Source of the DNA: Cycas panzhihuaensis
Taxonomy: Eukaryota > Plantae > Cycadophyta
Assembly: GCA_023213395.1 (NCBI GenBank)
Contig: CM041465.1
Location: 93,255,741-93,319,740 of the forward strand
Direction of reading: 5' to 3'
Length of the DNA: 64,000 nucleotides
Positions 6,716 to 47,549 of the stretch are shown here, one piece after another (position 1 is the first letter of the stretch; each line of letters starts with the position of its first letter). The notes beneath the pieces are model-generated. The model did no database searches. It had not been told where the DNA came from and was given only the letters and a program-made list of their open reading frames with translations. The position numbers and the translations under genes are program-made.

Positions 6716-9700
6716 AAGGATAAGGTTATTATCAAGGTCAAGGTCATCATCAAATACAAGGCCCAAGTCACCTCTACTAAGGGCAAAATAAGTTCCAAGG
6801 ATAAATATATTTTTAAGGCCAATTAAATCAAGGCCAAGGATATAATTTTGGACCTCAAAGAAGAGGAAGAAGTTAAAGTCCTAAGGGTAAAAACCAAGGA
6901 CAAAGAGGAAGAAGTCTAATGGTAGAGGAACAATCCAATATTCCTATTGCCATAGAAATGGACACTTGAAAGATAATTGCTTTTCAAAAAGATTAAATTC
7001 AAAAAAGGGGGCTACTAATATAATTGTTAAAGAAAGGCAAGATAAAAGATTATTTTTATTAAGTTTAATGACAAATGAGGAAGAAGATAGTTAGTATATA
7101 GATTTAGGATATTCTATACATATGACTCATAGACAAGAGTATTTAAAGAATTAGATAACACCAAAAGAAGTAATATTATGTTTGGTGATAACACCACTCA
7201 AGCAATAGTTGGTAAAGGGAATGTCTACATACAAACAAATTTTAGAGAAATAAGGTGCTTCATATCCCAATACTTAATAAAAATTTATTATCATTGGGAC
7301 AAATGATAAAACAAAAGTATAAATTAACCTTTAACAATGGAGAATATACCGTCAAAGATAAACTAAGGAATAAAGCAATTATGGCCAAAAGATAAATGAC
7401 TAGTGATAGGTTGTTCAAACTAGTCATTCTCCTAATAGACTATCATGCCCTAAAGGCATCAACTAATATGGATAGTAAAATATGGTATAAAATACTTTAC
7501 CATTTAAACTATAATAATTTGGTCTTAATGAAGAAAATAGACATAGTAATTAGACTATCTACTATTAAACATGGCAAAGAAATATATACAAGATGTATAT
7601 TTGGGAAACAACAAAGGGAAGGATTCTCTAATGAAAGTTATAAGGCCAATGGGCCCCTTCAGTTAGTATATACAAACTTATGTGGTCTAATGGATGTGCC
7701 CTTACTTGGAGGAGCTAAGTTCTTTATAACATTCATTGATGATTTCATAATGACGACTTGGGTCTACTTCCTTAAATTCAAGTCAAATACGCTATCATGT
7801 TTTATTGATTTTAGAAGTATAGTTAAAAGATAAAGTGAACTTAAAATTTTAACCCTAAGATCAAATAATAAGGGAGAATTCATTTCAAATAAATATAAAA
7901 ATTATTGCAGGTATTTTGGAATTAAGAAATAGCTCACAAATCCTTATACCCCATAACAAAATAGGATTGTTGAAAGAAAAAATAAGATAGGTGTTGAAAT
8001 AACAAGGGGTATGCTTAACAATAAGCATTTAGGAAATGAATATTAGGTAAAAGTTATACATATAACTATCTACTTTTTGAAAAATTATACTACTAAAGTA
8101 GTAGGGCTAGTTACACTAGAAGAAGCTTGGATAGGTTATAAGATAAGCATTAAACACTTGAGAATTTTTAGGTGCATAACTTATGCACATGTTCTAGATC
8201 AAAGGTGGATAAAGTTAAATAATAAGAGCATCAAATATATCTTTATAGGATATTATAACTCTTCTATATCCTATAAACTTTATGATCTAAAAGGAAAAAT
8301 GATTATTATAAGCAGGGATTTCATCTTTAAAGAAGATGAATTTTATCAAGAAGAAGTTATTAAAAAAGATAAGGGCAAGAATATCATAGTTGAAATGAAC
8401 TCAAACTCTAAGGTTATAAATGTACCTAATATAAATGAAGTAGGACCCTCTACTTCAAATCAAAGGGTCCCAAAATGGGTACAAAGGACTTATAACTCTT
8501 TAAATATTTTGGATATCAACTTTTAAAAAAGGACTACAAGATCTCAAAGGGTGAATTTTCACTTATGACGTAAGTTATGGAGTATAATGCGTCTCACAAC
8601 TTTGAAGAGGTAAATAATTAAGATGAATGAAAGAAAGCAATGAAAGAGGAATACAATGCTTTAGTGAAAAATTATACATGGGAGTTATTGGATTTTCCAC
8701 CTAGCAAGAATTCCATTAGGATAAAATAGGTCTATAAGACTAAGTATAAATTAGATAGGTCCATTGATAAATATAAGGTAAAGTTAGTTGCAACGGGCTA
8801 TGCACAATTTGAGGGCATAGATTATAATGAGACATTTGCACATATTATAAGGCTACAAATAGTTAGGTTAATCATAGACTTAACTGCACAACAAGGTTGG
8901 ATAGTACATCAAATGGATATAAAAAATGCCTTCTTAAATAACTATATTGATGAAGAAATTTATGTCTAATAACCTAAGGGGTTTAAAGTAAAATGAAAAG
9001 AAGACAAGGTCTATAAACTCAAGAAGGCTTTATATGGACTCAAGAAAGCACCTAGAGCCTGGTACTCTAGGATTAATAGATATTTCAAGGATAAAGGATT
9101 CTAAAAAATCTAATTAGATGCTAATTTATATATCAAATTGGAAGAAATCTCGGTACTAATTATGTGCAAAGAATTTGAGATGACAAACTTGGGACTAATG
9201 TATTACTTCTTAGGTATTAAAGTTTGGTAAGATGAAAAGGGGATATTTATCTTCTAAAGGAAATTCATATTGGATATATTACAAAAGTCTAACATGAGTA
9301 ATTGCAAGCTATTTGCAACATTGATAGAGGTTGGGATAAAATTATCTAAGTTTAAACAATTAGAACCAATTGATCCTACACTCTATAGGTAGTTGATTAG
9401 GAGCCTAATTTATTTGACTTTAACTAGATATCATGTATATAGTTAGTGTGGTTTCCAAGTTTATACATGAGATTACAATAAAACATTGATAAGTAGCCAA
9501 AATAATTCTTAGATATCTAAAGGGTACCATTGGATATGGATCACATTACAAGTCATGAGAGAACTACAAGTTGATTATCTATATAGACTTAAATTGGGCA
9601 GGTTATATAGATAATAAGAAATCTACCTCAGGTTATACATTTAATTTGGATTTAGTAGTAGTAACATGGAGTTCAAAGAAATGGACAACAATATCTATAT

Positions 9701-10376: not shown

Positions 10377-13300
10377 AAAATTTCTAGGTTATAGTGGCTA
10401 ATAGAGGGATATTCTGTTGTGGGAGAAAATGATGCAATATCAAGTTATAAATAGGTGATTATAAACTCTCTACTTCCATGTATGACATTCCTATTAGAGG
10501 AGTCAATGTTGTATTGGGGGTCTAATGGATCAAACCACTAGAGACCATTTAACTAAATATATAAGAACTCTTCATTTAATTTACTTATGAAGGAATCAAA
10601 TTTTAATTAAATGGTATCATTTCTCTCCCAAACCAAATCATTAGATCACACCATATAGAGAGGCTTATTAAAAGGGGTGATATAGGGATCATTACTAAAT
10701 ACTATGCTCTAGAAGGTTAAGAACTTCCAATGGAAGGGGGCATTTTCTAAGATGATGGCATCCCAAATGACTTAAAATTAATGCTTCACTACCACAACTA
10801 GGTCTTTTAGAATATTCCTCATGGTCTCCCCCCAATACATGACTAAGATCATAATCTTGACTTGGTAGTTGGAAGTAATTCTTCTTGTATTCAACCATAT
10901 TAATACCCCTACCAGTAAAAGAATGAAATGAAATGACTATTTTAAGAACTCCTTAATGCATGTACTATCAGGAAAAGTAATAGCATCTTTTCAGCCCTAA
11001 TGATTTTAGTAAGAAAAAAGGATGGCTCATTTCACATGTACGCAGACTGCTACAAGCTCAATAAGATAACCATCAAGGGTAAATTTCCTATACCAGTCAT
11101 CAATGGACTCTTAGATGAGCTCCATGGGGCAACATTCTTCATATCTTTGGACTTGTTATCATGATACCGTCAAATTAAGATCAATATAGAGGATGTTCAC
11201 AAGATGATATTTTATACATACAAAGGATATTACAAGTTTTTAGTCATGCCCTTTGGCCTGACTAATACCCCAGCCACCTTTTAAGGTCCCATGAACAAAC
11301 TCTTTTGACTTTATTTAATAAATTCCATCTTAGTCTTCTTTAATAACATACTTTTCTTTAATCGTACTAGAGAAGACCATCTTCAGCATGTTGATACAGT
11401 ATTATAGGTACTTGTAGATGACTAACTTTATACCCAAAAATTAAAGTGTTAATTTGGGCAAATAGAAATAGAATATTTGGGCCATATTATCTCCTAAAAA
11501 GAAGTTAAGGTAGATCCTAAGAAAATTATAGTTATCATAAATTGGCCTAAGCCCAAAAACGTCAAGGGCCATGGATTCTTAGGAATCACATGGTATTATT
11601 AAAAGTTTTTTCATGGTTATACAAGGATTACTTCCCCTTTAATCAACCTTTTGAAAAAGGATTCCTTTCATTGAAATGATAAGGCCTATGCAGTATTTGA
11701 ACACTTAAAGGGGGCTTTAACTATCACTCTAGTCCTTGTAACACTATATTTTATAAAGTCCTTCACCATTAAATATGACACATTGGGGCAAGGTATTAGA
11801 GTAGTCTTAATACAAGAAGGGAAACCTCTAGTCTTTGAAAATTGTCAACTTACACCCAAGGATCAATTCAAATCTACCTATGAAAAGGAGATGTTAATAA
11901 TTTTCCATACAATTAGGAAACTGTGACAATATTTATTAGAGATACATTTCCAAATTAAAATAAACCATGATAGCTTAAAATATTTCCTAGCATAAAGGAT
12001 GACATCTAAGGAATAATAAAATGGATCACCAAAATGTAAGCTTTTGACTTTGAAATCATATATAAAAAATTCAAGGATAATATAGTGGATAATACTTTAT
12101 CTCACAAGGAAAAAGGCTTTATATTATATTCTATCACCATGGTTAATCCCTCTTGGATAATGATTACCAAGTAAGAATGGGATTAGGACCCCTTTATAAA
12201 GTAGATTATTCAAGACCTTCAAGCTTGGGTAAGGAACTCAATCCATTACACATGGTATAAAAACATTCTTTGGTATAAGAATAAGATATATATATGCCTT
12301 CATTCTAGTCTCAAGGATTAATTTTTTCATGATGCATATGCTTCCCCAATAACAAATCACTCAAGTTTTCTACAAACATACCACCACTTAAAATATTCTT
12401 TCTTTTGCAAGGACCAAAAGAGATATAAAGTAATATGTTTCCTTATATAAAATTTATCAATGACATAAGACAAAAATAGTCAAGTCCCTAGGACTATTGT
12501 AACCCCTTCTTATACCAAATCAATGATGGGAAGAAATTTCCATAGACTTCATCGTGGGTTTGCCCAAGTTAGAAGGAAAATATACTATACTTTTGGTTGT
12601 TGATAGGCTAACTAAATATTCTCATTTTTGTGGCATCGAAAATATATATAAGGCAAATCAAATTATTAAGAAATTTTTAAAGGATATATATAGTTTATAT
12701 TGCATGCATAAAAGTATAGCAACTGATCAGGACCCTAAGTTCATTAGTAACTTCTAGATAGAACTCTTACATGTACTCGATACCAAACTAATAATAAGCT
12801 CATCCTACCATCCACAAATAGATGGTCAAACTGAGGTGATCAATAAGTGTCTTAAAGTATACCTTCATTACTATGCTTTAAATAAGTTGGGCTAATGGTG
12901 TCATTGGCTTCCCTTAGTAGAATGATTTATATAAACAAGAATGACTTTGTTCCAAGCATCGTATGGCTATGAATCACTCACACTTAAGAATTATGCCATA
13001 ATTAGTTTTAAGGTTCAAGCAGTTAAGGACCACATCCACTAAACAATAAAGATTCTCAATCTAATTAAGGAAAATATGAACCTTACATAGAATTAAATGA
13101 AACAATAGGCAAATAAAGGGTGAAGTGAATAAGAATTTTAACTAGGTGATTGGGTATACTTATGGTTACAACTGTATAAGCAAGCATCTCTCAAAAAGGA
13201 TGGGAAATATAAATTACAACCCTAATTTTATAAACCTTATAAAATTCTTAAGACGATTGGTGAAGTTACATATGATTTAGACTCACCGCCATCATTTAGG

Positions 13301-13517
13301 ATCCATAATGTCTTTTATATTTCATGTCTTAATAGGTTAATTAAGCAAAAGGTATAAGTTTAAATATAATTATCTATCTTAAATGAGGAGGGACAACTTC
13401 AACTTATTCTAGAATGTATCATTATTGGAAGAATCCAACATCTACAATCTAGGTAAATCATTGAGTATCTCATCAAATAGAAACAACTTCCATAAGAAGA
13501 TGCAACCTAGGGGGACT
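10377..13517 (+). pseudogene. Chromovirus-type Ty3/gypsy pol remnant (protease tail, RT, RNase H, integrase, chromodomain), Chromo-1
   Basis: VIVAN...VNVVLGV*WIK; [15 protein letters not shown]; STYEKEML; ORF 12554-12757 (VVDRLTKYSHF); SSYHPQIDGQTEVINK; chromodomain-like IEYLIK*KQLP*EDAT* at 13460-13510. Confidence 0.93.
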
Positions 13518-13829
13518 TGTTAGGGTTCCAACCCCTAACTTAATTTCTCTTATATCTTCTACTTCTTCTCTCTCTTATCTTTTCTTATATCTTCTAGTTC
13601 TTCTTTTTTCTTAATATTTCACATGCATAAGTAGGAGGTTATGTAGTGGTTATAAAGCCCCATATATATTTATGTAATCCTTAGAGTGAAATATTTTAAA
13701 TATCATTAGTATTGTATGTAATTAAGAGGTTGCCCCCTTAAAGGGTATTACAATATAAGTACTTTCTTTTGGTGTTATTTGGGCACTATGATGGTGTGTT
13801 ATTGTCATTGAAGGAGTGGTATCCAACCA
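13518..13829 (+). repeat. LTR of family 'A', copy 1 (possibly the native 3' LTR of Chromo-1)
   Basis: TGTTAGGG...GGTATCCAACCA termini; colinear homology along its length with 25954-26309; preceded by AGGGGGAC; flanks GGACT and AAAAG are not a TSD. Confidence 0.8.
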
Positions 13830-23409: not shown

Positions 23410-25953
23410 TAGCTTACCCCCCACTAGATCATGGGTGTCACCACACCATTAAGCTAAAAAATCCCCATGACCCTATCAGTCTTTGGCCCTATAGAAATTC
23501 ATATTTTTTTAAAAATAAAATAGAAAAAATTATCAATGAGCTAATGGAAATGGGGATAATCCAACCTAATAAGAACCTATATGTTGTCCTTGTTATATTA
23601 GTTCAAAAACAAGATGGATCCTTTAGGATTTATATAAATTATTATAAACTCAATAAAATAACTATAACAAATAAGTTCCCCACTCTAAGAATTAATGATA
23701 TATTAGACAAAATTTATGGTACTATAATTTTTACCAAATTAGATCTCTAATTAGGATACTATCAAATAACTATTGCACCTGAAGATTGATAGAAAACTGC
23801 CTTTTGAACACACTATGGCTACTTTGAGTTTCATGTTATGCCTTTTGGCCTATGTAATATTTTAGCCACTTTTTAATTTTTAATGAGCAAGGTGTTTGCC
23901 CCATAGCTTAGGAAATTTATTATTATTTTGTTTAATGATATTCTCATTTATATCATAGGTATGCCCATTTATGCTCATCATTTAGAAATAATTAACTTTT
24001 GGTAAAACCAATTATATGCCAAGCTCTTTAAATATGAGTTTGGTAAGTATAAACTATAATACCTTGGCCACATTACCTCCATATAATATGTTTGGGTTAA
24101 TTCTAACAAAATATCAATCATTACGAACTAGCCAACTCTTAAAAGCCTTACCTAGTTATATGCTTTCTTAGGACTTACTAGATTTTATAGGCGGTTCATC
24201 CAAAATTATATAGCCTTAATAACTCCATTAACTATTTTAGTTCAAAAAATTTCTTTCTAATGGTTACTCATTACTATTAATGTCTTTAATCATCTTAAAG
24301 AAGTCATATCCTCCACTTTGGTTTTGGCCACACTAAACTTCTCTCAACAATTCCAACTAGAGTGTAATGAATCAAGCTTTGGCTTGGATATGGTACTTAT
24401 ATAAAACCTATTTAAAATTATGTTTAAAAGTTAAAAGCTTAAAGACCATGGATGTAGGTTGTTAATGTACTAAATAGAAATGAAGTCTATATTCCATACC
24501 ACTAAAAAATGGCATCAGTATCTCATAGGATTAAAATTCACAATCTTAATCGATCACCATAGCCTCTATCACCTATCAAACCAACTATTTTTGTTAAAAG
24601 AATAAACTAAATAGATTGAGTACCTCTAAGTTTTTGACTTCATGGTCATTTAAAAGAAAGGCTAAGACAATGTAGTGGTAGATACTCTTTCTTGCCTCTC
24701 AATTCATCCCTCCCTCATTCCTTCATATGAATCCTTCATTCATACCATCCCCACATCCCATCCCACATGGGTATATGACCTAGCTATGGATAATTAGTCC
24801 TAATCAAATTGTGTTAAATGGGCTAACAACGTGCATATCCAAAAGAATTAGTCCATACAAAACAACCTTCTTTTATATAAAAATTGCATACTCATCCACC
24901 TAAACTCCAACTTTATTAATCAACTCTTATTATAATACCAATTTACTCCATTAGGAGGCCATTTAAGATTCAGCAAAACACACCAATAAATTTGTTTTGA
25001 CTTCCTCTAGCCATACATGAAATCATCCATTCTTACATTTATTTCAAATTGTGACACATATTAGTATAATAAAGTCAACACTAAAGCTCAACCATGTCTC
25101 TCACAACCACTTATATTTTATAAGAAAAGTGGCAAGATATTTACATGGATTTCATTATAGGTCTACCTTTATCTATTAGGTATGACTCCATATTAGCAAT
25201 AATTGACTAATTAACAAAATTACGTGTACTTTTTATCAATTCACACTTCATATAAAGTATTACATATCACAGATCTATACCTCTAAATAATATTCTATTT
25301 ATATAAGTTTCTATTAACCATCACGTATGATTGAGATACGCAATTCACTAGTTCTTTTTAGTAAGAACTCTTTCAAGCCTTAGGTATGTCATTCAAGACA
25401 AGTTCTGCTTATGACCCCCAAATAAATAATTAATCAAAAGTTCTTAATAAAACACTGGAGACTTATATTATTTTGTATTTAAACACCAGGCAAGATGGTC
25501 ATCATGGATAGCCCTTGTAGAATACTAGTATAATTATTATTACCACTCAGCTATAGGAATGTCCCTATTCATATCCCTTAATGATTACCCTCCACCATCC
25601 ATTATATGTTAGCTACCAACCTTTGCATCATAGTCATACAATATAAGTTATAACATATAGAATAAAATTTAAACACATTTTAAACACCCTTAAGCAAAAA
25701 TTAACTAAAACGTATAATCAAATAAAGTAATTAGTAGATAATCATCATTCAGATCAATCTTTTACCACTAATGATCTTGTGTTTCTATGCCTTTAACCAT
25801 ATAAGCAATAATCTCTCAAACATTAGAGGAACCATAAGCTCAATCCTCACTACTATGGCCTTCATAAAGTTCTCCAACGTGTTAGTGAAGTGGCCTATGC
25901 TTTGAAACTCCCATCTAGTACTAAGATTTATAATATCTTCTATGTTTCCTATT
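23410..25953 (+). pseudogene. Second chromovirus-like Ty3/gypsy pol remnant (RT, RNase H, integrase), Chromo-2
   Basis: ORF 23544-23750 (KQDGSFRIYINYYKLNKITITNKFP); YFEFHVMPFGLCN; FLGLTRFYRRFI; WQDIYMDFIIGLP; KLNPHYYG...VAYALKLP...IYNIFYVSY. Confidence 0.92.
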
Positions 25954-26309
25954 TATTAGGGATCCAAATCCTAACTTGCCTTCTGTTATATTCTCTTATA
26001 TATTTTACTTCTTCTACTTCTTCCCTCTTCTTACTATCCCATAGGCATAAGTAGAAGGTTGTGTAGTAGTCATCAAGCACTATATATATTTATGTAATAT
26101 CCCACATGCATAAGGAGGAGGTTGTATAGTGAGCATAGATCCATATTAATATTTATGCAATCTTTAGAGTAGGGTATCTAAAATATCATTGTTATTGCAT
26201 GTAATTGGGAGGTTTCCCACTCAAAGGGTATTATAATACAAGTGCTCTTTTAGAGTTATTTACATATTATATTGGTGTGCAATTGTTATTAAAGAGTGGT
26301 ATCTTACTA
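25954..26309 (+). repeat. LTR of family 'A', copy 2, in 5' position
   Basis: TATTAGGGATCC...GGTATCTTACTA; homologous to 13518-13829; followed by AG and the PBS TGGTATCAGATCC at 26312. Confidence 0.85.
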
Positions 26310-27559
26310 AGTGGTATCAGATCCAAGACCTAGGTTCAAATCTTGTGGGGACAATACCACTTATGGGGGCAGCAAGGTAACGCGCCAAACATCATCGATA
26401 TGTAAAACACCATCGTATTTAAGGCTTGTGGGGCACATGAACACTGATGAAAGTAGGGTTATGCGAGGCTAGCCCATTTGACATGAGGAGAGGTAATGGT
26501 ATACTTGGTAGGGAGCCCTTTTCACTAACACCTCAAGGTTTTAGTGTAACAGTTTGTTATAAGTGGTATCAAAGCTAAGACCTAAGTTCAAATCCTGTGG
26601 GGGTAACATCGCTTATGGGGATGGCAGGATAACGTACCAAATATTGATGATGTACAAAATGTCATCCTAGCTAGGGCCTATGGAATACATGAATACCAAT
26701 GAAAGAAGAGCTAGTCCATTCGACCTAAGAACAGGTAATGGTCTACTTGGTAGGGGGCCTTCTTCACTAACACCTCAAGGTTTTGGTGTAATGATTCATT
26801 ACAAGTGGTATTAGAGCCAAGACCTAGGTTTGAATCTCATGGGGGTATTACTTCCTATAGGGGCAGTAGGATGACGTACCAAATATCATTGATGCATAAA
26901 GCATCATCATAGCCAAGGTCTATGGGGTTCATGAACACCAATAAAAGCGAGGCTAGGTAAGGATAACTCATTCGACCTAGGGGGAGGTAATGGTCTACTT
27001 GGTGAATGGCCCTCTTCACTCACACCTCAAGGTTTTGATGTAATAGTTTATTACAAGTGGTATCAGAGCCAAGACCCAGGTTCAAATCCTGTAGGAGCAA
27101 TGCCACTTATGGGGATAGTGGGGTAATACACTAAATTTCATCAATGTGTAAAATATCATCGTAGTTTGTGCCTATGGGGCACATGAATATCAGTGAAAGA
27201 AAATCTAGGTAGGGCTAGCCTATTCAACCTAAGGAGAGATAATGGTCTATTTGGGTGGGGGACCTCTTCACTAACACCTCAAGGTTTTGGTGTAACAATT
27301 CATTGCAAGTGGTATAAGAACTAAGACCTAGGTTTCAATTCTATGGGGGCAACGCCACTTATGGGGATAGTAAGGTGACATTCCACACATCATTAATATA
27401 CAAAACGTCATCATAGCTAGGGCCTGTGTGATGCATGAATGCTAGTGAAAGTAGGGCTAGGCAGGGCTAGCCAATTTGACCTAGGGGGAGGTAATGGTCT
27501 ACTTGGTAGGGGGCCCTCTTCATTAACACCTTAAGGTTTTGGCATAATAGTTTGTTACA
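26310..27559 (+). repeat. Tandem array of five ~252-bp TRIM-like units (PBS, ~170-bp internal part, PPT, ~68-bp mini-LTR)
   Basis: tRNA-iMet-type PBS (TGGTATCAGAGC consensus) at 26312, 26564, 26806, 27058 and 27310 (periods 252, 242, 252, 252). Purine tract AGGGGGAG(G) precedes each GTAATGGTCTAC...GTTACA segment. Confidence 0.92.
27036..27089 (+). promoter_or_regulatory. Putative Pol III type-2 promoter (A box and B box) spanning the mini-LTR end and PBS; representative copy
   Basis: A-box-like starts at 26542, 26784, 27036, 27288 and 27540; B-box-like starts at 26333, 26585, 26827, 27079 and 27331; constant 43-nt offset. CpG-restored consensus is TGGCGTAACGG and GGTTCGAATCC. Confidence 0.7.
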
Positions 27560-27564
27560 CTATT

Positions 27565-29936
27565 CCACATCAAGGAGGCCCTATCTATCCACAAGAAAGG
27601 CCATCATTTTAATAACCAAGCTAATTCTATTAATAGAATTAGAACTTAAGACCCACTCAGAGCTAACGATAGTAGAATGGATAGTAGTTCCCATCTAGGA
27701 ATCAAAGAAACCTTAGTAATCAGCAAGAAGCCCATGTGGTAGACACCTAGGACACCACCTCTCAAAACCTATTTTTTATAGTAATGTCATCTCAACATGG
27801 TGACAACTCATGGTTATTTGACTCAGGTACCACTCACTACATGACTAGCATAAAAAATATATTAAAAGAGACCTATCCCATTAGCATACAAGCAGTCACA
27901 TTTGGTGATAACCTGACATATAATGTGACTAAAATTGGAAAGGACCTAATAGTATTAAAAGAATCTAATATAAGGTATCATATAAATAATGCCTTCTTAG
28001 TTCTATGCATGAAAATTAATTTGTTTTTAGTCAGTCAAGTGAACAAGTAATTTTGGATGTTTACTTTAGTTAGGACATCTGTACCATCATAGATCATGCA
28101 ATTGGACAACTTGTAGTAATTGGTCATGAAGATGATGGCTTATATAAGCTTGACAATATTCCTATAGCCACCAATCCACTAATAACATCATGTTGAATGG
28201 CCTCAAATGCATAGCTTGATAAGAGGAAAGATATCATGATGGAAGACTCCCCTTTTGTCCAATAACTAGGTGAATGCTCCTACTCAAATGAACCATCTAT
28301 CTCTAATAATGCCAGAGACTAGTTATGTCATCAACACCTGGGTCAGTTGAATATGCAAAATTTAAACCTCATGTCAAGGATTCATATGGTATATGGCCTA
28401 CCCAAGATTAAGAGATATAGTAGCATTTGTGAGGCATATCTTGTAGGAAAGCAACAAAGAGAAAAATCCCTATCTAAGAATGCATGGATAGCCTCCCAAC
28501 CATTAGAGTTGGTCCACTCAAACATTTGTGGGTGGGTCTATGTCAATATAATCACTCAATGGTAGCCTATATTTTATGATATTCATAGATGATTATTCTA
28601 AGAAAATGTGGGATTACTTCTTGAGAAATAAGTACTAAGCCCTAGATAAATTCAATGAGTTCAAAGATGAAGTAGAAAATGAGAGTGATATGACCATGAA
28701 GACACTCAGATCTGATAATGGTGGCTATTATATTTCTAATCAATTCACCAATTTCTATAAAGAACATGACATCAAATTCTAATTTTTAGCACCTTACATA
28801 CTACAACAAAATAGTGTAGCTGAGAGAATGAACCAAACCTTTGTGAATAAAAGAAAAGCCATGCTAAGTACTGCCAATGTCACCACTAGATTTTGGATTA
28901 ATGTAATTATGATTATTGTATATCTAACTAACAGGAGTGTCACTATGGTAGTTAAGAATATCACTCCTAAGGAATCTTGGTCAAGACTTAAACCAATTAT
29001 TACGCACTTGAAAACATTTAGATGCATGGAATACAAATGTATTCCAAAGGAGAATAAAAAGAAGTTTGATAATAAAAACCTTAAGTACATCTTCCTTGGC
29101 TATGTACCTACTTATAAAGCCTACAAGGTGTTTAACATTATTGGTAAATAAATATACACAACTCAGGATGTCATCTTCATAGAAGATACACATGACCTAA
29201 ATTCTCCTCAAATTTAGTTTATAGTAAAAGATAAAGTTTGTGTGCTTCAAGTGCCTCTTAGACAAATTTTAGAGCTACCAGTACCAGCCTCCTCCAACAC
29301 ACTAGGCCCTTTATCAATTCCAACAATCTTCACTTTTACAACAAAAGCAAGCATAACTATGCCACCTATTTTAGTTGATAACCTTCAAGTGGAAGCTACC
29401 AACATTCAGCCACATTCCAAGTAAGTTCAACAGTTGTTAAAGGATACTCCTCCTCCTCCCATAATTGACAAAAGGCCATCAAAGATGAGATAGTCTACCA
29501 ATTTTTCCCTAATGGCATATGTCTTAGAAACCATTAAACCTTCTATATTTGAGAAGGTAGAGAAAGACCAAACATGGAAAGGAACCATAGATGAAAAGAT
29601 AAAATCCATCCTCAAAATAAAACTTGGAAACTAACAGATGTGCCACTTGGAAAGAAGTTAGTTAACAGAAAAAGGCTTTATAAAGTAAGATTCCATGCCA
29701 GTGGCCCTATTGAGTGTAATAAAGCTCTCTTGGTATTGCAGAGTACCTTCCTAAATAGAAAGCTTACAAAAGAAGTTCTCTTACAATAACCTCCCAATGA
29801 CTTCATCAACTAAGTTCACTGACCTACTAAGGACTAGGTTATAGACATCTTCATCAAAGCACTTAGCAAACCAAAGTTTGAATGATTTTAACATGACCTC
29901 AACATCAAATGTAATAAAGTTTCCATTAAGGGAGGG
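27565..29936 (+). pseudogene. Ty1/copia remnant (gag tail, protease, integrase, internally deleted RT and RNase H), Copia-4
   Basis: ORF 27784-28050 (WLFDSGTTHYMT); HQHLGQLN; MKTLRSDNGG; QQNSVAERMNQT; DIFIKALSKPKFE; PPT AAGGGAGGG at 29928-29936. Confidence 0.92.
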
Positions 29937-30266: not shown

Positions 30267-30825
30267 GCTTACTTTATATTTTGATGAATGTATATAATAT
30301 TTAGATCCTAAAGCAATTTTTTTAGTTCTTTCTTTGTTTACTCTCTAATCATTCTTTAATCCCCAATAATAGTTTCAGGACCCATTGCCCATGTTGATTC
30401 CTTTATAATGTTAAGGGTTTAATTTTATCTACTTGTTATGATGTCTTCTCTTTACAAACAGCCAACTTCTTTCTCTTTAGATCTCATTTTAATATTTTAG
30501 TTGTTGACCTTTGTACATGGCATCATTTCTCCTTATTTTTAAAATATGCCAAAATCCCTAAATCCCTCTAAAAATTATCAAGAAGCTTTAACACAAGATT
30601 GAGAAGATCTTAGTTAGAATGGATATATTCATAAAAGGATAATGGATTAATAAATTCAACTCCATATTATTATAAAAATTCTTTGAAGAAATTTAGTGTG
30701 GGCTAACCCTCTAGCTTTTCAAAATCCTTATGTATTTATTATGTATAATATGTTTCAAACCCTTACATGAGCCACATCAACTTCCATTAAAATTTTTGTT
30801 TCTATATCCTTTACTATAATGAATG

Positions 30826-33392
30826 TAAAATGCTTACCATGGGGTGGTATCCCTACGTTTAGCAAGAGGACTGGTTATACAAGATTAGATTAGGCTAAAT
30901 AGTAAGGACTCACCTCGTAGGGCATCCGTGTACCGGAGTGTGGATTTGGGACCTACAGAGGTGTCTAGTTTCTTTTAGGTAGCTACACAAGACGAGGCCT
31001 TCCTACCCCTCAGATGGTCGGGAAGAGGAGGAGAGAACCTGGCACATTGTGTCTTCTCAAGTAAGTGAGAAGGTAACACGAGAATGGGAATGTATGTAAA
31101 ATGTGGCATCTAGGTGTAGGCTGGCTAAAGGGGCAAGGTGTGGGTAGTTCTAACATGAAATGAACTATCTAAATATGCTAGACTAACTACTAGATAAAAG
31201 ATATATAAAGCAAAAGTATGTTCTTTTCCTCTTTTAGTTTCTTATGTGTTTCTAACTATGCAAGCATGTGCATAAAGTACAACATCATAAAGGAAACATG
31301 CAAGGACAAGGAAAATACCTAGACCTAGCATCTGAATGGAGCACTACACGTCTTTTCGCTTCCTGCTCCACTTGTTGTGCATGCGATACCGGTCAGTGAT
31401 GGATGCCGTGAATGACCAAAGAGGGGCTAGCTTACCTCCTCAATATGTGGAAAAAGTGAATGGTAAATAACAGAAAATGACAAAAAGTGTTAAATATGGA
31501 ACTAACCTGCAATGGGTTTGTTCCACACGCGACTCCACTGATGCGAGATCCTACAAATCAAATAGATGAGTATCTCCCTCTCGAAAGAGGGGCCATAAAA
31601 TAGATCGAGTATATGTACTAAACTTAGAGGAAACAAAATCAAACTAAGCTAAGCATATATATTATTATTTAATGACATAACATTCAGTAAAGTTCTCACA
31701 AACAGTTACCGCAAATGACACCCAAAATGAAGAGTATGGCCTCGGAATGCCTAACTCACCCACAAGAAATCTCCACTTAGTCTCGGGAAAGGGAAACAAA
31801 CTCTCAACAAGGACATGGGGGCAGTGAATAATGAGAAAGAAGAGGGTAACTAAAAGGTATGCAAACACCCAAAGAATGAGATGCTACGGACAGCAAATCA
31901 TCTAGTTGGGCGTCTTGCAAACTATTAACCGGCAGGAAGTGGTTTTGGGGCTTATGCGGTGCCCAAAACCAATGGACGAAAATCTAAAACAAGCGTGGAA
32001 ATGGGCTGCCAACGCTGATTTAGATCTAGAAAAAAGCCTCCAAATTCCCTAACCAGATTTCTAGAAAGGCACGAAGGTGCAAAGGGAGAGAAAGTAAGGG
32101 ACTGAACCCTTGGGGAGAAGGGCAGTAAGGGGGACTGGCCCCGCCTTCTTCCCTCTAACTTTCCCTATGTTATCCCCTTGTAACAGCCACCTAAAAGTGG
32201 GCTGGCAGGAATGATGGGGGAGCTCTATGCTGCAACAAGCAAGAAAGCTAAAGATAAACAGGCATAACAACTAAAAGGCACATAAACTAGGAATTTACTC
32301 ACAAAAAATGGAAAGAAATAGTATGTATTTCAAAGTGAATATGAAGGTACCTTATTGTGAAGAGAAGAAACATGAACTTGCTAGAAAATGGCAGGAAAAA
32401 ACTAGCATCTAGTAAGATATGATGGCAAGTTTAGAAGAGGAGAGAAATGTGAGAATGATCATGTGAGTTTGGAGCCTTTGAAGCTTGTCTTTTTGGGAGA
32501 CTTTGAAGAAGATCCTCCTTGAAGCCTTGAAGACCTGCAAATAGATGTAGAGCTTGTTGTTCATGAGAAATAGGGGCAGCAATGGTCCCTTGTAATGAGC
32601 TAGCAACTGTGTGTGTCTCTCTGCAGTAGTTTTCTGTGGAGGGTTTTGTATAATTCTGTGTAAAAATGAGCAAAAGATTCTTGAAAATTAAAAGAAAGTT
32701 TTGTTTTATCCCTTGCTCACTACAGGTGAACGTTGGGGATCTCAGGGCGCTGCAAATATACAGATGCCACATGGCAGTTTCATGAAAAAAGTAGAAATTA
32801 TTGCGTAATTTTTAAAAAAAAATTCAAATAGTCACCTCGCAGTAAACTTTGCGGTACCGTGGCAAAGATCGCAGTGCCGCTAAGTTCATAACAGTACGAG
32901 ATTGGAAACAAAAAATAAGTAAGAATAAGCATAAATAAGGGTTTGGAGTTAATATTAAGAGTAAATTAAGGCTAAAACAACTGGGGAGAATACCCAGGTG
33001 ATGGGCAAGTAGCTAAGAAAGTAAACTAGGTCTCAACTAAGGATTCAGTCAGACTTAAAAGAGACTGTAACACGAGCAAGGTGTCATAATAGGGGCGAAC
33101 ATGATTGGCTGAAGCATCCTGAGGGGTTATAAAGACGAAATGGGTGGCTATGCGGCATATGGGGTGTAGCATTCGCTAGAGAATACCCTTATTATGAGTC
33201 GTCATAAGCTGAAAGCATGTTGTAAGTGCATGTAATATGATCAAGCAAAGAGGCAATGCATGCAGGTAGGCATGCGTCAAGCAGTCTGTACTAAATGACC
33301 TCCGCCAAGTAAGAGTAGAGAGAAGTGAGAACGTATACTTGAGCTTACCTAAGTCGATGCGTCTTGAGTCCATTCTCGGTAGCCAGGAAACA
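30826..33392 (-). repeat. 3' LTR of the Tat-like element (2567 bp)
   Basis: Direct repeat of 44985-47549; plus-strand termini T(A)AAA...AAACA. Confidence 0.95.
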
Positions 33393-44983: not shown

Positions 44984-44984
44984 G

Positions 44985-47549
44985 TGAAACGCTTGCCGTG
45001 GGGTAGTATCCCTATGTTTAGCAAGAGGACTAGTTATGCAAGATTAGGTTGGGCTAAATAGCAAGGACTCATCTCGTAGGGCATCCGTGTACCAGAGCAC
45101 AGATTCAGGACCTACAGACGTGTCTGGTTGCTTTTAGGTAGCTACACAAGGTGAGGCCTTCCTACCCCTCGGATGGCCAGGAAGAGGAGGAGAGAACTTG
45201 GCACATTGTATCTTCTCAAGGAAGTGAGAAGGCAACATGACAATGGGAATGTATGTAAAATGTGGCGTCTAGGTGTAGGCTGACCAAAGAGGCAAGGTAT
45301 GGGTAGTTCTAACACGAAATGAACTATCTAAATATGTTAGACTAACCACTAGATAAAAGATATGCAAAGCAAAAGTATGTTCTTTTCCTCTTTCAATTTC
45401 TTATGTGTTTCTAACTATGCAAGCATATGCATAAAGTACAACATCATAAAGGAAACATGCAAGGATAAGGAAAATACCTGGACTTGGCGTTTGAATGGAG
45501 CACTATGCATCTTTTCGCTTCCCACTTCTTCCTACTCTACTTGTTGTGCATGCGATACCGGTTGGCCATGGATGCCGTGAACGACTGAAGAGGGGCTAGC
45601 TCACCTCCCTAATATGTGGAAAAAGTGAATGATAAATAACAGAAAATGACAAAAAACGTCAAATATGGAACTAACCTGTAATGGGTTTATTCCACACGCG
45701 ACTCCACTGATGCGAGATCCTATAAATCGAATAGACGAGTATCTCCCTCTTGGAAGAGGGGCCACAAAATAGATCAAGTATATGTACTAAACTTAGAGGA
45801 AACAAAATCAAACTAAGCTAAGCATATATATTATTATTTGATGAAACAACATTCAGCAAAGTTCCCGCAAATAGTTACTGCAAATGACACCCAAAATGAA
45901 GAGTATAGCCTCAAAATGGTTAACTCACCCACAAGAAATCTCCACTTAGTCTCAGGAAAGGGAAACAAACTCACAGTAAGGACATGGGGGCAGCGAATAA
46001 TGAGAAAGAAGAGGGTAACTAAAAGGTATGCAAACACCCAAAGAACGAGATGTTATGGACAACAAATCGTCCAACTGGGCGGCTTGCAAACTGTTAACCA
46101 GCAGGAAGCAGTTTTGGGGCTTATGCAGTGCCTAAAACCAATAGACAGAAATCTAAAACCAGCATGACAATGGGCTGCCAACGCTGATTTAGATCTAGAA
46201 AAAAGCCTCCAAATTCCCTAACCTGACTTCTAGAAAGGCACAAAGGTGCAAAGGGAGAGAAAGTAAGGGACGGAACCCTTGGGGAGAAGGGCAGCAAGGG
46301 GGACTAGCCCTGCCTTCTTCCCTCTAACTTTCCCTATGTTATCCCCTTGTAACAGCCACCTAAAAGCAGGTTGGCAGGAATGATGAGGGAGCTCTATGGT
46401 GCAACAAGCAAGAAAGTTAAAGATAAACAAGCATAGCAACCAAAAGGCACATAAACTAGGAATTTACTCACAAAAAATAGAAAGAAATAGCATGTATTTC
46501 AAAGTGAATATGAAGGTACCTTGTTGTGAAGAGAATAAACATGAACTTGCTAGAAAATGGCATGAAAAAACCAGCATCTAGTAAGATATGATGGCAGGTT
46601 TGGAAGAGGAGAGAAATGTGAGAATGATCCTGTGAGTTTAAAGCCTTTGAAACTTGTCTTTTTGGGAGACTTTGAAGAAGATCCTCCTTGAAGCCTTGAA
46701 GACCTGCAAATAGATGTAGAGCTTACTGTTCGTGAGCAATAGGGGCAGCAATGGTGCCTGGTAATGAGCCAGCAGCTGTGTGTATCTCTCTGCAATAGTT
46801 TTCTGTGGAGCATTTTGTATAATTCTATGTAAAAATGAGCAAAAGATTCTTGAAAATAAAGAGGAAGTTTTGTTTTATCCCCTGCTCACTGCAGGTAAAC
46901 ATTGGGGATCTCGTGGGTCGCAAATGTGGGTGCCACGCGTAATTCTCGTGAAAAAGCGTAAACTATCGATGATTTTTTAAAATTTCAACAGTCCCCACAA
47001 GAACTTCGCGGTACCACGATAAAGATCACGGTACTGCTAAGTTTACAGCGGTATGAGACTGGAAACAAAAAATAAGTAAATATAAGTAGAAATAAGGGTT
47101 TGGAGCTAAAATTAAGAGTAAATTAAGGCTGAAACAACTAGGGGGAATACCCAGGTGATGGGCAAGTAGCCAAGAAAGTAAACTGGGTCTTAACCAAGGA
47201 TTCAGTCAAACTTGGAAGAGACTGCAACACGAGCAGGGTGTCGTAATAGGGGCGAACATGATAGGCTGAAGCATCCCAAGGGGTTGTGGAGATGAAGTGG
47301 GTGGTTGTGCACCATATGGGGTATAGCATTCGCTGCAGAATGCCCCCATTGTGAGTCGTCATAGGCTGAAAGCGTGCTATAAGCACATGCGATATGATCA
47401 AGCAAAGAGGTAATGCAGGCAGGCAAGCATGCATCAGGAAGTCTGTATTAAATGACCTCAGACAAGTAAGAGTAAAGAGAAGTGAGAACGTATACCTGAG
47501 CTTACCTGAGTCGATGCGTCTCGAGTCCATTCCCGGTAGCCGAGAAACA
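44985..47549 (-). repeat. 5' LTR of the Tat-like element (2565 bp)
   Basis: TGAAAC...GAAACA; direct repeat of 30826-33392; adjacent to the PBS. Confidence 0.95.

Follow-up and report, generated by a model that had tools for sequence, protein, structure and literature searches.

INTRODUCTION

TRIMs are non-coding miniature LTR retrotransposons, and the LTRs of some are too short to hold a Pol II promoter, which raises the question of their transcription. Among other short non-autonomous retroelements, tRNA-derived SINEs have A and B boxes spaced as in tRNA genes and end their transcripts at T runs; SINEs are without LTRs, PBS or PPT and are mobilised by LINEs. Tandem arrangements of TRIMs are well documented: a survey of 43 plant genomes reported TA-TRIMs, L5I4 forms included, for 129 subfamilies from 35 of them (Gao et al. 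2016, PMC4717578); promoter, tRNA and Pol III are mentioned nowhere in that report. SMART (FRetro129) is a grass-specific element of 292 bp with 85-bp LTRs that contain a TATA box, and its transcription was left as an open question by its authors (Gao et al. 2012, PMC3281118).

Three kinds of TRIM, namely Helenus, Ajax and Cassandra, are grouped as TRIMp3 and are thought to use an internal Pol III promoter (Kojima 2024, PMC10886601). Every LTR of these TRIMs contains a complete tRNA-like or 5S-like sequence, in agreement with what the preliminary description of the present locus had said of known Pol III TRIMs, and the screen that detected them compared tRNA or SINE2 sequences with the LTR entries of Repbase (PMC10886601). 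The Helenus boxes retain TRGCY..YGG (box A) and GGTTC (box B), and the sole plant Helenus reported is that of Selaginella, with a 120-bp LTR (PMC10886601). Here we describe a tandem TRIM array and three groups of relatives in which an A-box-like motif near the LTR end and a B-box-like motif behind the PBS stand at tRNA-like spacing on the two sides of the LTR/PBS junction.

RESULTS

Architecture of the array

In the window (the whole 64-kb stretch of DNA analysed), positions 26310-27559 are a tandemly arrayed TRIM (Table 1). The preliminary description of a miniature LTR retroelement array with PBS, PPT and 65-bp LTRs is borne out by alignment of the units and by Tandem Repeats Finder, which reports a period of 252 and 5.0 copies at 26304-27542. 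There are five unit copies, and neither the repeat finder nor sensitive blastn gave a further one in the 64-kb window. The alignment gives each unit the order AG, 12-nt PBS, ~175 nt of non-coding sequence, purine tract and 65-bp mini-LTR; unit 2 is 242 bp long, with a 10-bp deletion, and the other units align readily. Listings of ORFs over the region include none of at least 80 aa inside the array. A monomer of this TRIM would be ~315 bp long with LTRs of 65 bp.

The elements are shorter than 1 kb, non-coding and bounded by short direct LTRs with TG..CA ends, with a PBS 2 nt after every LTR and a purine tract 3 nt before every LTR, as is expected of TRIMs. Dispersed copies of a TRIM have TSDs of 4-6 bp, and here CTATT stands on both sides of the integrant, and contigs leave the LTR terminus into unrelated flanks (see below). 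A TA-TRIM has at least three LTRs and at least two internal regions in tandem with shared LTRs, and the composition of this array is L6I5, that is, six LTRs (one large and five mini) and five internal regions. A tandem TRIM array as such is a known arrangement and is ordinary. Pairs of units are 72-78% identical, at K2P distances of 0.27-0.38 that are roughly equal, and substitutions among them are mostly transitions (ts/tv 4.4). The roughly equal distances and the excess of transitions indicate that the array was formed at one time and has decayed like methylated plant DNA; it is old and inactive, and its units are dead.

Table 1. Positions of the array, its parts and the surrounding gypsy features in the window
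Feature	Position	Strand	Remarks
Five 252-bp TRIM units	26310..27559	+	AG, PBS, internal region, PPT, mini-LTR
PBS copy 1	26312..26323	+	complementary to the 3' end taken as that of initiator Met tRNA
PBS copies 2-5	26564-26575, 26806-26817, 27058-27069 (exact), 27310-27321	+	0-2 mismatches overall
Mini-LTR 1 (65 bp, TGGT...TTATA)	26497..26561	+	ends set by relatives and array end
Mini-LTRs 2-5	26739-26803, 26991-27055, 27243-27307, 27495-27559	+	
PPT-like GACCTAGGGGGAGG of unit 3	26974..26987	+	3 nt before mini-LTR; homologous site in every unit
T4 run and A-box-like 11-mer, mini-LTR 1	26539..26552	+	
T4 and A-box-like 11-mer, other mini-LTRs	26781-26794, 27033-27046, 27285-27298, 27537-27550	+	
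B-box-like 11-mer, unit 1	26333..26343	+	9 nt after the 12-nt PBS, as in every unit
B-box-like 11-mers, other units	26585-26595, 26827-26837, 27079-27089, 27331-27341	+	
Left TSD CTATT	25949..25953	.	same pentamer at right end
Right TSD CTATT	27560..27564	.	
356-bp large LTR (TATTAGGG...TCTTACTA)	25954..26309	+	5' end of integrant
Gypsy integrase C-terminal SH3 domain, insertion target	25827..25946	+	Pfam SH3_Tf2-1, E=2e-11
Second large-LTR copy, gypsy 3' LTR	13518..13829	+	behind integrase SH3 and PPT

The reference for the 12-nt PBS is TGGTATCAGAGC, from which the array copies deviate at 0-2 positions. It is the exact complement of a CCA-ended 21-nt small RNA printed in PMC6678167, which is taken to be the 3' end of initiator Met tRNA; these last 21 nt of the primer tRNA give TGGTATCAGAGCCAGGTTTCG. 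In the unit alignment, the mini-LTR starts with TG and ends with TTACA. Its 3' end is fixed by loose contig ends behind 26803 that enter unrelated flanks, and its 5' end by relatives that read GGTAA and then TGTTACAC before 26761; the end of the array at 27559, directly before the TSD, is further support for the mini-LTR boundary.

The integrant and its gypsy LTR

The array is part of one retro-integrant (25954-27559) that lies with a 5-bp TSD in a gypsy integrase gene, whose interrupted frame picks up again behind the right CTATT. The right end of the integrant is a mini-LTR, and the left end is the large LTR, which includes a 63-bp internal tandem duplication (26035-26161) and is followed by AG and then the first PBS. 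The LTR upstream of the first unit is thus a foreign one of 356 bp, which the preliminary description had overlooked. A second copy of the large LTR lies elsewhere in the window, downstream of an integrase SH3 domain (13226-13354, E=2e-10) and a PPT (13505-13517), and this placement identifies it as a gypsy 3' LTR. The PPT core before it, ACCTAGGGGGA at 13505-13515, is also the PPT core of the TRIM.

The large-LTR gypsy family and the TRIM have in common the PPT core, the LTR termini (TGTTA...TTACA), the AG spacer and the PBS, from which we infer that this gypsy family is probably the helper of the TRIM. Ordinary reverse transcription yields two like LTRs. A helper LTR on the left with a TRIM LTR on the right is the product expected of a plus-strand strong-stop jump between two cDNAs, and the chimera may thus stem from a transfer of the helper's plus-strand strong-stop DNA to TRIM cDNA via the common PBS. 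A similar chimera is present on an unrelated metagenome contig (L046), which reads copia LTR, PBS, TRIM internal region, mini-LTR, PBS and copia gag. These gypsy-LTR/TRIM and copia-LTR/TRIM chimeras are physical evidence on the packaging helpers.

Two further ideas about the large LTR were set aside. Homology between the large LTR and the mini-LTR is not established, with local alignments at z 0.5-1.9 and z=4 only when the common stretch of LTR end, AG and PBS is included. A truncated PBS behind the large LTR at 13.8 kb was dropped, the TGGTATC there being part of the LTR end.

Contigs of three low-coverage DNA runs, under two organism labels, were aligned to 25900-27650 at 80% likeness. The large LTR is extremely abundant in these runs, its contigs stopping at 26309/26310, and over the array coverage is deep only at the 3' part of the mini-LTR and the PBS region, the internal region being shallow. 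Between 35 and 57 contigs per run end their match right behind 26803, at the TTACA end, and continue in AT-rich sequences with low mutual agreement. These sequences past 26803 are insertion flanks of dispersed TRIM copies, as the preliminary description had expected. Loose ends from the same runs also reveal a diverged subfamily in the same genome that has other sequence after ...CCAAGAC and still reads GGTTCGATTCT or GGTTCAATTCT. X20, the one run guessed to be of RNA, gave only a few contigs, and these pass on into other sequence.

A-box-like and B-box-like motifs in the window

The A-box-like 11-mers of the five mini-LTRs start at 26542, 26784, 27036, 27288 and 27540, and the distance from the start of each A box to that of the next B box is exactly 43 nt in all four complete pairs, so that the 11-mers and spacing quoted in the preliminary description stand. 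Its claim that they fit the tRNA consensus holds for the spacing, which is tRNA-like, and less for the boxes themselves, which are decayed in the array: against the A-box consensus TRGCNNAGY..GG (PMC5758916), the array A boxes have just 4-6 of 9 matches. The B-box consensus is GGTTCGANTCC (PMC5758916), and the 11-mer of unit 4 (27079-27089), GGTTCAAATCC, agrees with it at 9 of 10 positions. B boxes with at most one mismatch number five in the window, three of them inside the array, against 5.0 expected. The pair of A and B boxes is not significant within the window alone, and the weight rests on relatives elsewhere.

A T4 run stands directly before every A box. It had been described as the only T4 of the unit consensus, and it is the only one in units 2-5; unit 1 carries a second T4. 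Depletion of T4 within the units is not significant, with P(0) at 0.34-0.64. The CAGG/CCTG stem proposed around the B box is perfect in unit 4 and imperfect in the other units.

Related elements in metagenomes

Metagenomes were scanned for a PBS with GGTTCRANTC within 14 nt, a key that leaves the sequence upstream of the PBS outside the pattern. The scan returned 78 loci, 59 of them distinct, and among these are three further TRIM groups (A, B and C) with LTRs of 50-70 bp that share the T4, the putative A box and the spacing of 43-44 nt. Group A consists of 10 diverged loci with T4 followed by TGGTGCAGTGG and an A-box match of 8/9, and includes several complete elements of ~260 bp with 68-bp LTRs and approximate 5-bp TSDs. 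Group B has five loci, with LTRs of 51-62 bp, T4 followed by TGGTGTAATGG and an A-box match of 7/9. Group C is one old locus, seen on nine contigs, that has T4 followed by TAGCAAAGTGG and an A-box match of 9/9, and is a decayed tandem TRIM with a period of 225. Some relatives are only ~250-260 bp long. Relatives in L023 and L055 have 5-bp flanks that match at four of five positions. In the remaining families the A box matches at 4-6 of 9 positions, save for one family with 8/9 at the non-tRNA spacing of 49.

Spacing from A box to B box is 43 nt in groups A and C and in the window, 44 nt in group B and 41-46 nt in decayed copies. The parts between the boxes vary in an offsetting manner, the LTR end and post-PBS spacer being 14+6 nt in groups A and C and 11-12+9 nt in group B and the window. 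Just 34-76 nt around the junction align between the window and its relatives. The candidate module of ~95 nt, comprising T4, A box, LTR end, PBS and B box, is the sole part that aligns between the four groups, in the order hairpin-T4, A box, 11-14 nt of LTR end, PBS, 6-9 nt and B box.

Conservation was scored on the majority string of each of the four groups, over the ~100-nt stretch only. Agreement, out of 4 groups, is 4.0 for the T4 and 3.2 for the A box, and 3.55 for the B box, a value biased by the inclusion of the B box in the search key; it is 2.65 for the upstream LTR, 2.3 for the LTR end, 2.4 for the spacer and 2.2 downstream. Across lineages, T4 and A box are thus better kept than their neighbours (2.3-2.65), at a spacing of 43-44 nt, in keeping with the preliminary description, which had made this conservation a check on its proposal; this comparison covers groups A-C selected via the B box, and the four groups share descent and represent few independent events. 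An nhmmer half-model built from the LTR side and the PBS only gave two new 5' junctions (n=2), one with a B box that carries a transition (L045) and one in which the B box is lost (L072). An initial metagenome pattern, made from the T-run side of the window family and the PBS, had 0 matches; a pattern from the A-box side had three chance matches in one phage gene among viral contigs and 0 among genome contigs.

The LTRs leave 24-40 nt before the T4, and the ~24 nt of group B provide too little room for a Pol II promoter. No TATA is present in group B or in the window family, and group A LTRs have TATAAATA ~37 nt before the A box.

tRNA mimicry and RNA fold

The preliminary description had called the promoter tRNA-mimicking, and in the sense of a fold this does not hold. 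ARAGORN and Rfam found no tRNA genes in the window and 36 relatives, 121-nt slices included, and the best match has 9 bits and covers the T arm only. Rfam likewise gave no 5S match over 25500-28500 at E up to 10. RNAalifold found neither a conserved cloverleaf nor a conserved fold of the module (-2 kcal/mol), which points to constraint on sequence. The exception is a terminator-like 3-bp hairpin next to the T4, with 94% pairing and with changes on both sides at two of the three pairs.

DISCUSSION

A candidate Pol III promoter split by the PBS

We tentatively read the junction block as having been, in active copies, a type-2 Pol III promoter split by the LTR/PBS junction. To judge from the sequence comparisons, the chances of this reading are a little short of balanced, and it is the most likely of the mechanisms considered. 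TFIIIC would contact both boxes, one within U5 and the other past the PBS, and the sole promoter would be a 5' or internal LTR, since a B box is needed downstream. Transcription by Pol III would begin some 5-15 nt ahead of the A box, pass the weak T4 on this first encounter and end at the T4 of the following LTR, where the small hairpin perhaps aids termination. The product would be an uncapped genome RNA of roughly 200-260 nt with a very short terminal repeat, the implied R being ~8-12 nt. The short LTRs, with no TATA in either group B or the window family, would fit a promoter whose elements lie downstream of the start.

The position of the start is a weak point of the proposal, as is the shortness of the implied R. 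In the usual type-2 geometry, transcription begins 10-18 nt before the A box and hence ahead of the T4, which conflicts with the start directly at the A box given in the preliminary description. Speaking against the promoter, a T4 between the expected start and the A box should also stop fresh transcripts. Plant Pol III genes use upstream TATA elements, and in group A the TATAAATA sequence would set the start 7-12 nt before the A box by either rule. Since B-box-like motifs are common beside the PBS in the register of the T-arm complement, the B box probably began as extended primer complement, that is, as the complement of the T arm of the primer tRNA, and it could still take part in priming. 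The helpers' sequences after the PBS, in the copia element of L046 and in the large-LTR family (X20 contig), are without a proper B box.

Alternative explanations

The alternative that deserves most attention, although we regard it as unlikely, is that the block acts in cis during reverse transcription and integration: pairing between the B-box-like motif and the primer's T arm would be one such signal, the U5 motif would serve integrase or primer placement, and Pol II or read-through from host genes would supply the RNA. Precedents for such pairing are the primer-activation or U5-TΨC contacts made by retroviruses and the extended PBS boxes found in Ty1. Within the metagenome set, 26 of the 59 distinct loci, many of them in unrelated elements, have a B-box-like motif 0-2 nt behind the 12-nt PBS, which is the register of the T-arm complement; one locus (L010) tracks the tRNA complement for ~30 nt, and in the window units 14 nt of complement (…GAGCCA) remain ahead of a 7-nt insert. 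TTGGTGT is found near the helper LTR ends too, though in a weak alignment with z below 2, and the TATAAATA sequence of group A could serve Pol II. Yet the TRIM motif matches the B-box consensus (9-10/10) better than the ungapped complement of the primer, it is 4-7 nt out of the complement register, and helpers with the same primer are without the motif at that place. A role in priming also leaves unexplained the invariant T4, the A-box matches of up to 9/9 and the spacing of 43-44 nt held by offsetting indels, and a Pol II origin of the RNA is at odds with group B and the window family, which have no TATA and almost no U3.

Resemblance to A and B boxes could instead be a matter of chance and common ancestry, with the block kept as the neighbour of an essential PBS and LTR terminus. 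The window itself would suit this explanation, its B boxes occurring at the chance rate and its A boxes agreeing with the consensus at no more than 4-6 of 9 positions; a score of 8/9 arose by chance, at a spacing of 49, in one unrelated family, and the four groups are relatives that amount to few independent events. We nevertheless consider it improbable, because the chance that a B box has an A box scoring 8/9 or better at a distance of 40-46 nt is estimated at ~1.4e-3 per family, or ~0.05 over some 35 families, and because the LTR end is poorly kept (2.3/4) even though it lies closer to the PBS than do the A box and the T4. It is hardly credible that the array is an ordinary satellite which arose within the 3' untranslated region of the gypsy element around it. 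Its position near the 3' end of a gypsy pol gene does recall the tandem repeats known near such ends in plants, but the integrant is bounded by a 5-bp duplication, the integrase frame continues behind it, every unit has a PBS, a PPT and LTR ends of the form TG..CA, and the dispersed copies stop at the LTR terminus.

Implications

Taken more broadly, the split-promoter reading would point to a widespread and so far undescribed lineage of ultra-small LTR retrotransposons (~250-320 bp, LTRs 50-70 bp), transcribed by Pol III from a tRNA-gene-type promoter with the A box in U5, a B box behind the PBS exapted from T-arm complement and a hairpin-T4 terminator 5' of the A box, and using gypsy and copia helpers. 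We put this wider proposal forward with still more reserve, as a possibility that we incline slightly against. If it is true, no transcription would start from a solo or 3' LTR, all LTRs would act as terminators, and there would be little to keep the LTR from becoming vanishingly short. A promoter complete only where an LTR meets the PBS region would explain the extreme miniaturisation of these TRIMs, their harmless residence in genes, and the retention of only the ~95-nt junction block over long evolutionary time; it would also be a third design among Pol III-driven TRIMs.

A promoter divided between an LTR entry and an internal entry would escape screens of LTR libraries, and the open-access full-text literature yielded no description of the split layout. 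New here are the three further TRIM groups with the layout of the window, and novelty as a promoter design would be conditional on function. The junction block is in any case a simple search key for annotating such elements.

Comparison with known systems

In its alternation of LTRs and internal regions with common LTRs, the array is like the TA-TRIMs (PMC4717578), from which it differs in that its first LTR is a foreign, larger gypsy LTR. SMART, likewise an ultra-small and highly conserved TRIM, has a helper-like PBS and PPT and unrelated LTRs (PMC3281118); compared with its published description, the elements here have LTRs of 50-70 bp and A/B-box-like motifs, and the window family has no TATA. 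The extended PBS contacts of retroviruses and Ty1 also complement the T arm of the primer next to the PBS and are hence B-box-like, whereas the motif described here is out of register and is paired with an A-box-like motif and a T4. Unlike tRNA-derived SINEs, which would have no LTRs and a LINE-type 3' tail, the array has LTRs, PBS and PPT.

The closest comparison is with TRIMp3, which likewise have a PBS, a PPT and 5-bp TSDs and occur in plants and fungi (PMC10886601). Helenus is distinguished by tRNA-derived sequence within the LTR, and the window and its relatives gave 0 genes with ARAGORN and no tRNA match with Rfam; Cassandra and Ajax are distinguished by 5S rRNA-derived sequence in the LTR, for which there was no match over 25500-28500. 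A/B-box-like motifs, T4 and spacing are conserved across the four groups, and the present elements would be TRIMp3 in a wide sense if these motifs act as a promoter. They differ in that only the putative A box lies in the LTR, the PBS stands between the boxes and the putative B box is internal.

Chimeric elements joined at the primer-binding site

The array of tandem 252-bp TRIM units forms the right part of a retro-integrant with two different LTRs, which is flanked on both sides by a perfect CTATT duplication and lies in a gypsy integrase gene of a related family. A plus-strand jump from one cDNA to another, between helper and TRIM and via the PBS that they have in common, best accounts for the unlike LTRs. 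The left LTR contains a 63-bp tandem duplication (26035-26161; two copies, 76% matches) that is missing from the LTR copy at 13.5 kb.

Metagenome locus L046 is a second helper/TRIM chimera, independent of that in the window, with copia as the helper (its gag is Retrotran_gag_2) and the PBS again as the joint. At metagenome locus L015, a normal TRIM internal region comes after the four mini-LTR and PBS copies, and their repeat unit equals plus-strand strong-stop DNA.

Features of the window and of metagenome loci
Feature	Location	Description
Retro-integrant	25949-27564	left, 356-bp gypsy-family LTR; right, 65-bp TRIM LTR; flanking TSD
Copia/TRIM chimera	L046:7470-9750; also L041	copia 5' LTR, PBS, group-B TRIM internal region, mini-LTR, PBS, copia gag
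Strong-stop-like repeats	L015:11-340	51-bp mini-LTR and 13-nt PBS, repeated head to tail in four copies; period 64-65
Hairpin	alignment A3 (junction block) columns 12-21, e.g., window 26773-26782	3 bp, 4-nt loop; last base is first T of T4
Copia fragments	7396-8523; 27784-29148	gag-pre-integrase, integrase SH3, Pol beta-barrel domain

The copia fragment at 27784 begins at the expected place of the interrupted gypsy's 3' LTR. Elsewhere in the window, long direct repeats (30825-33144 and 44984-47301; 86-92% identity, ~14.16 kb apart) are probably the two LTRs of one large retrotransposon.

Promoter-like motifs and the T4 hairpin

Among LTR elements with an initiator-Met PBS, the B-box-like GGTTCRANTC lies mostly 0-2 nt behind the 12-nt PBS (26 of the 59 distinct loci in L001-L078), an offset that is the register of the primer T-arm complement. 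The A-box-side pattern matched three IMG/VR contigs (L079-L081), each time in the same phage structural-type gene; these lack TRIM features, and we rejected them as TRIM relatives, the matches being due to chance. All four TRIM groups retain the hairpin at T4, the TTTT run directly before the A-box-like 11-mer, with compensatory changes (UA/CG, CG/GC) preserving its pairing. The hairpin resembles a small terminator hairpin.
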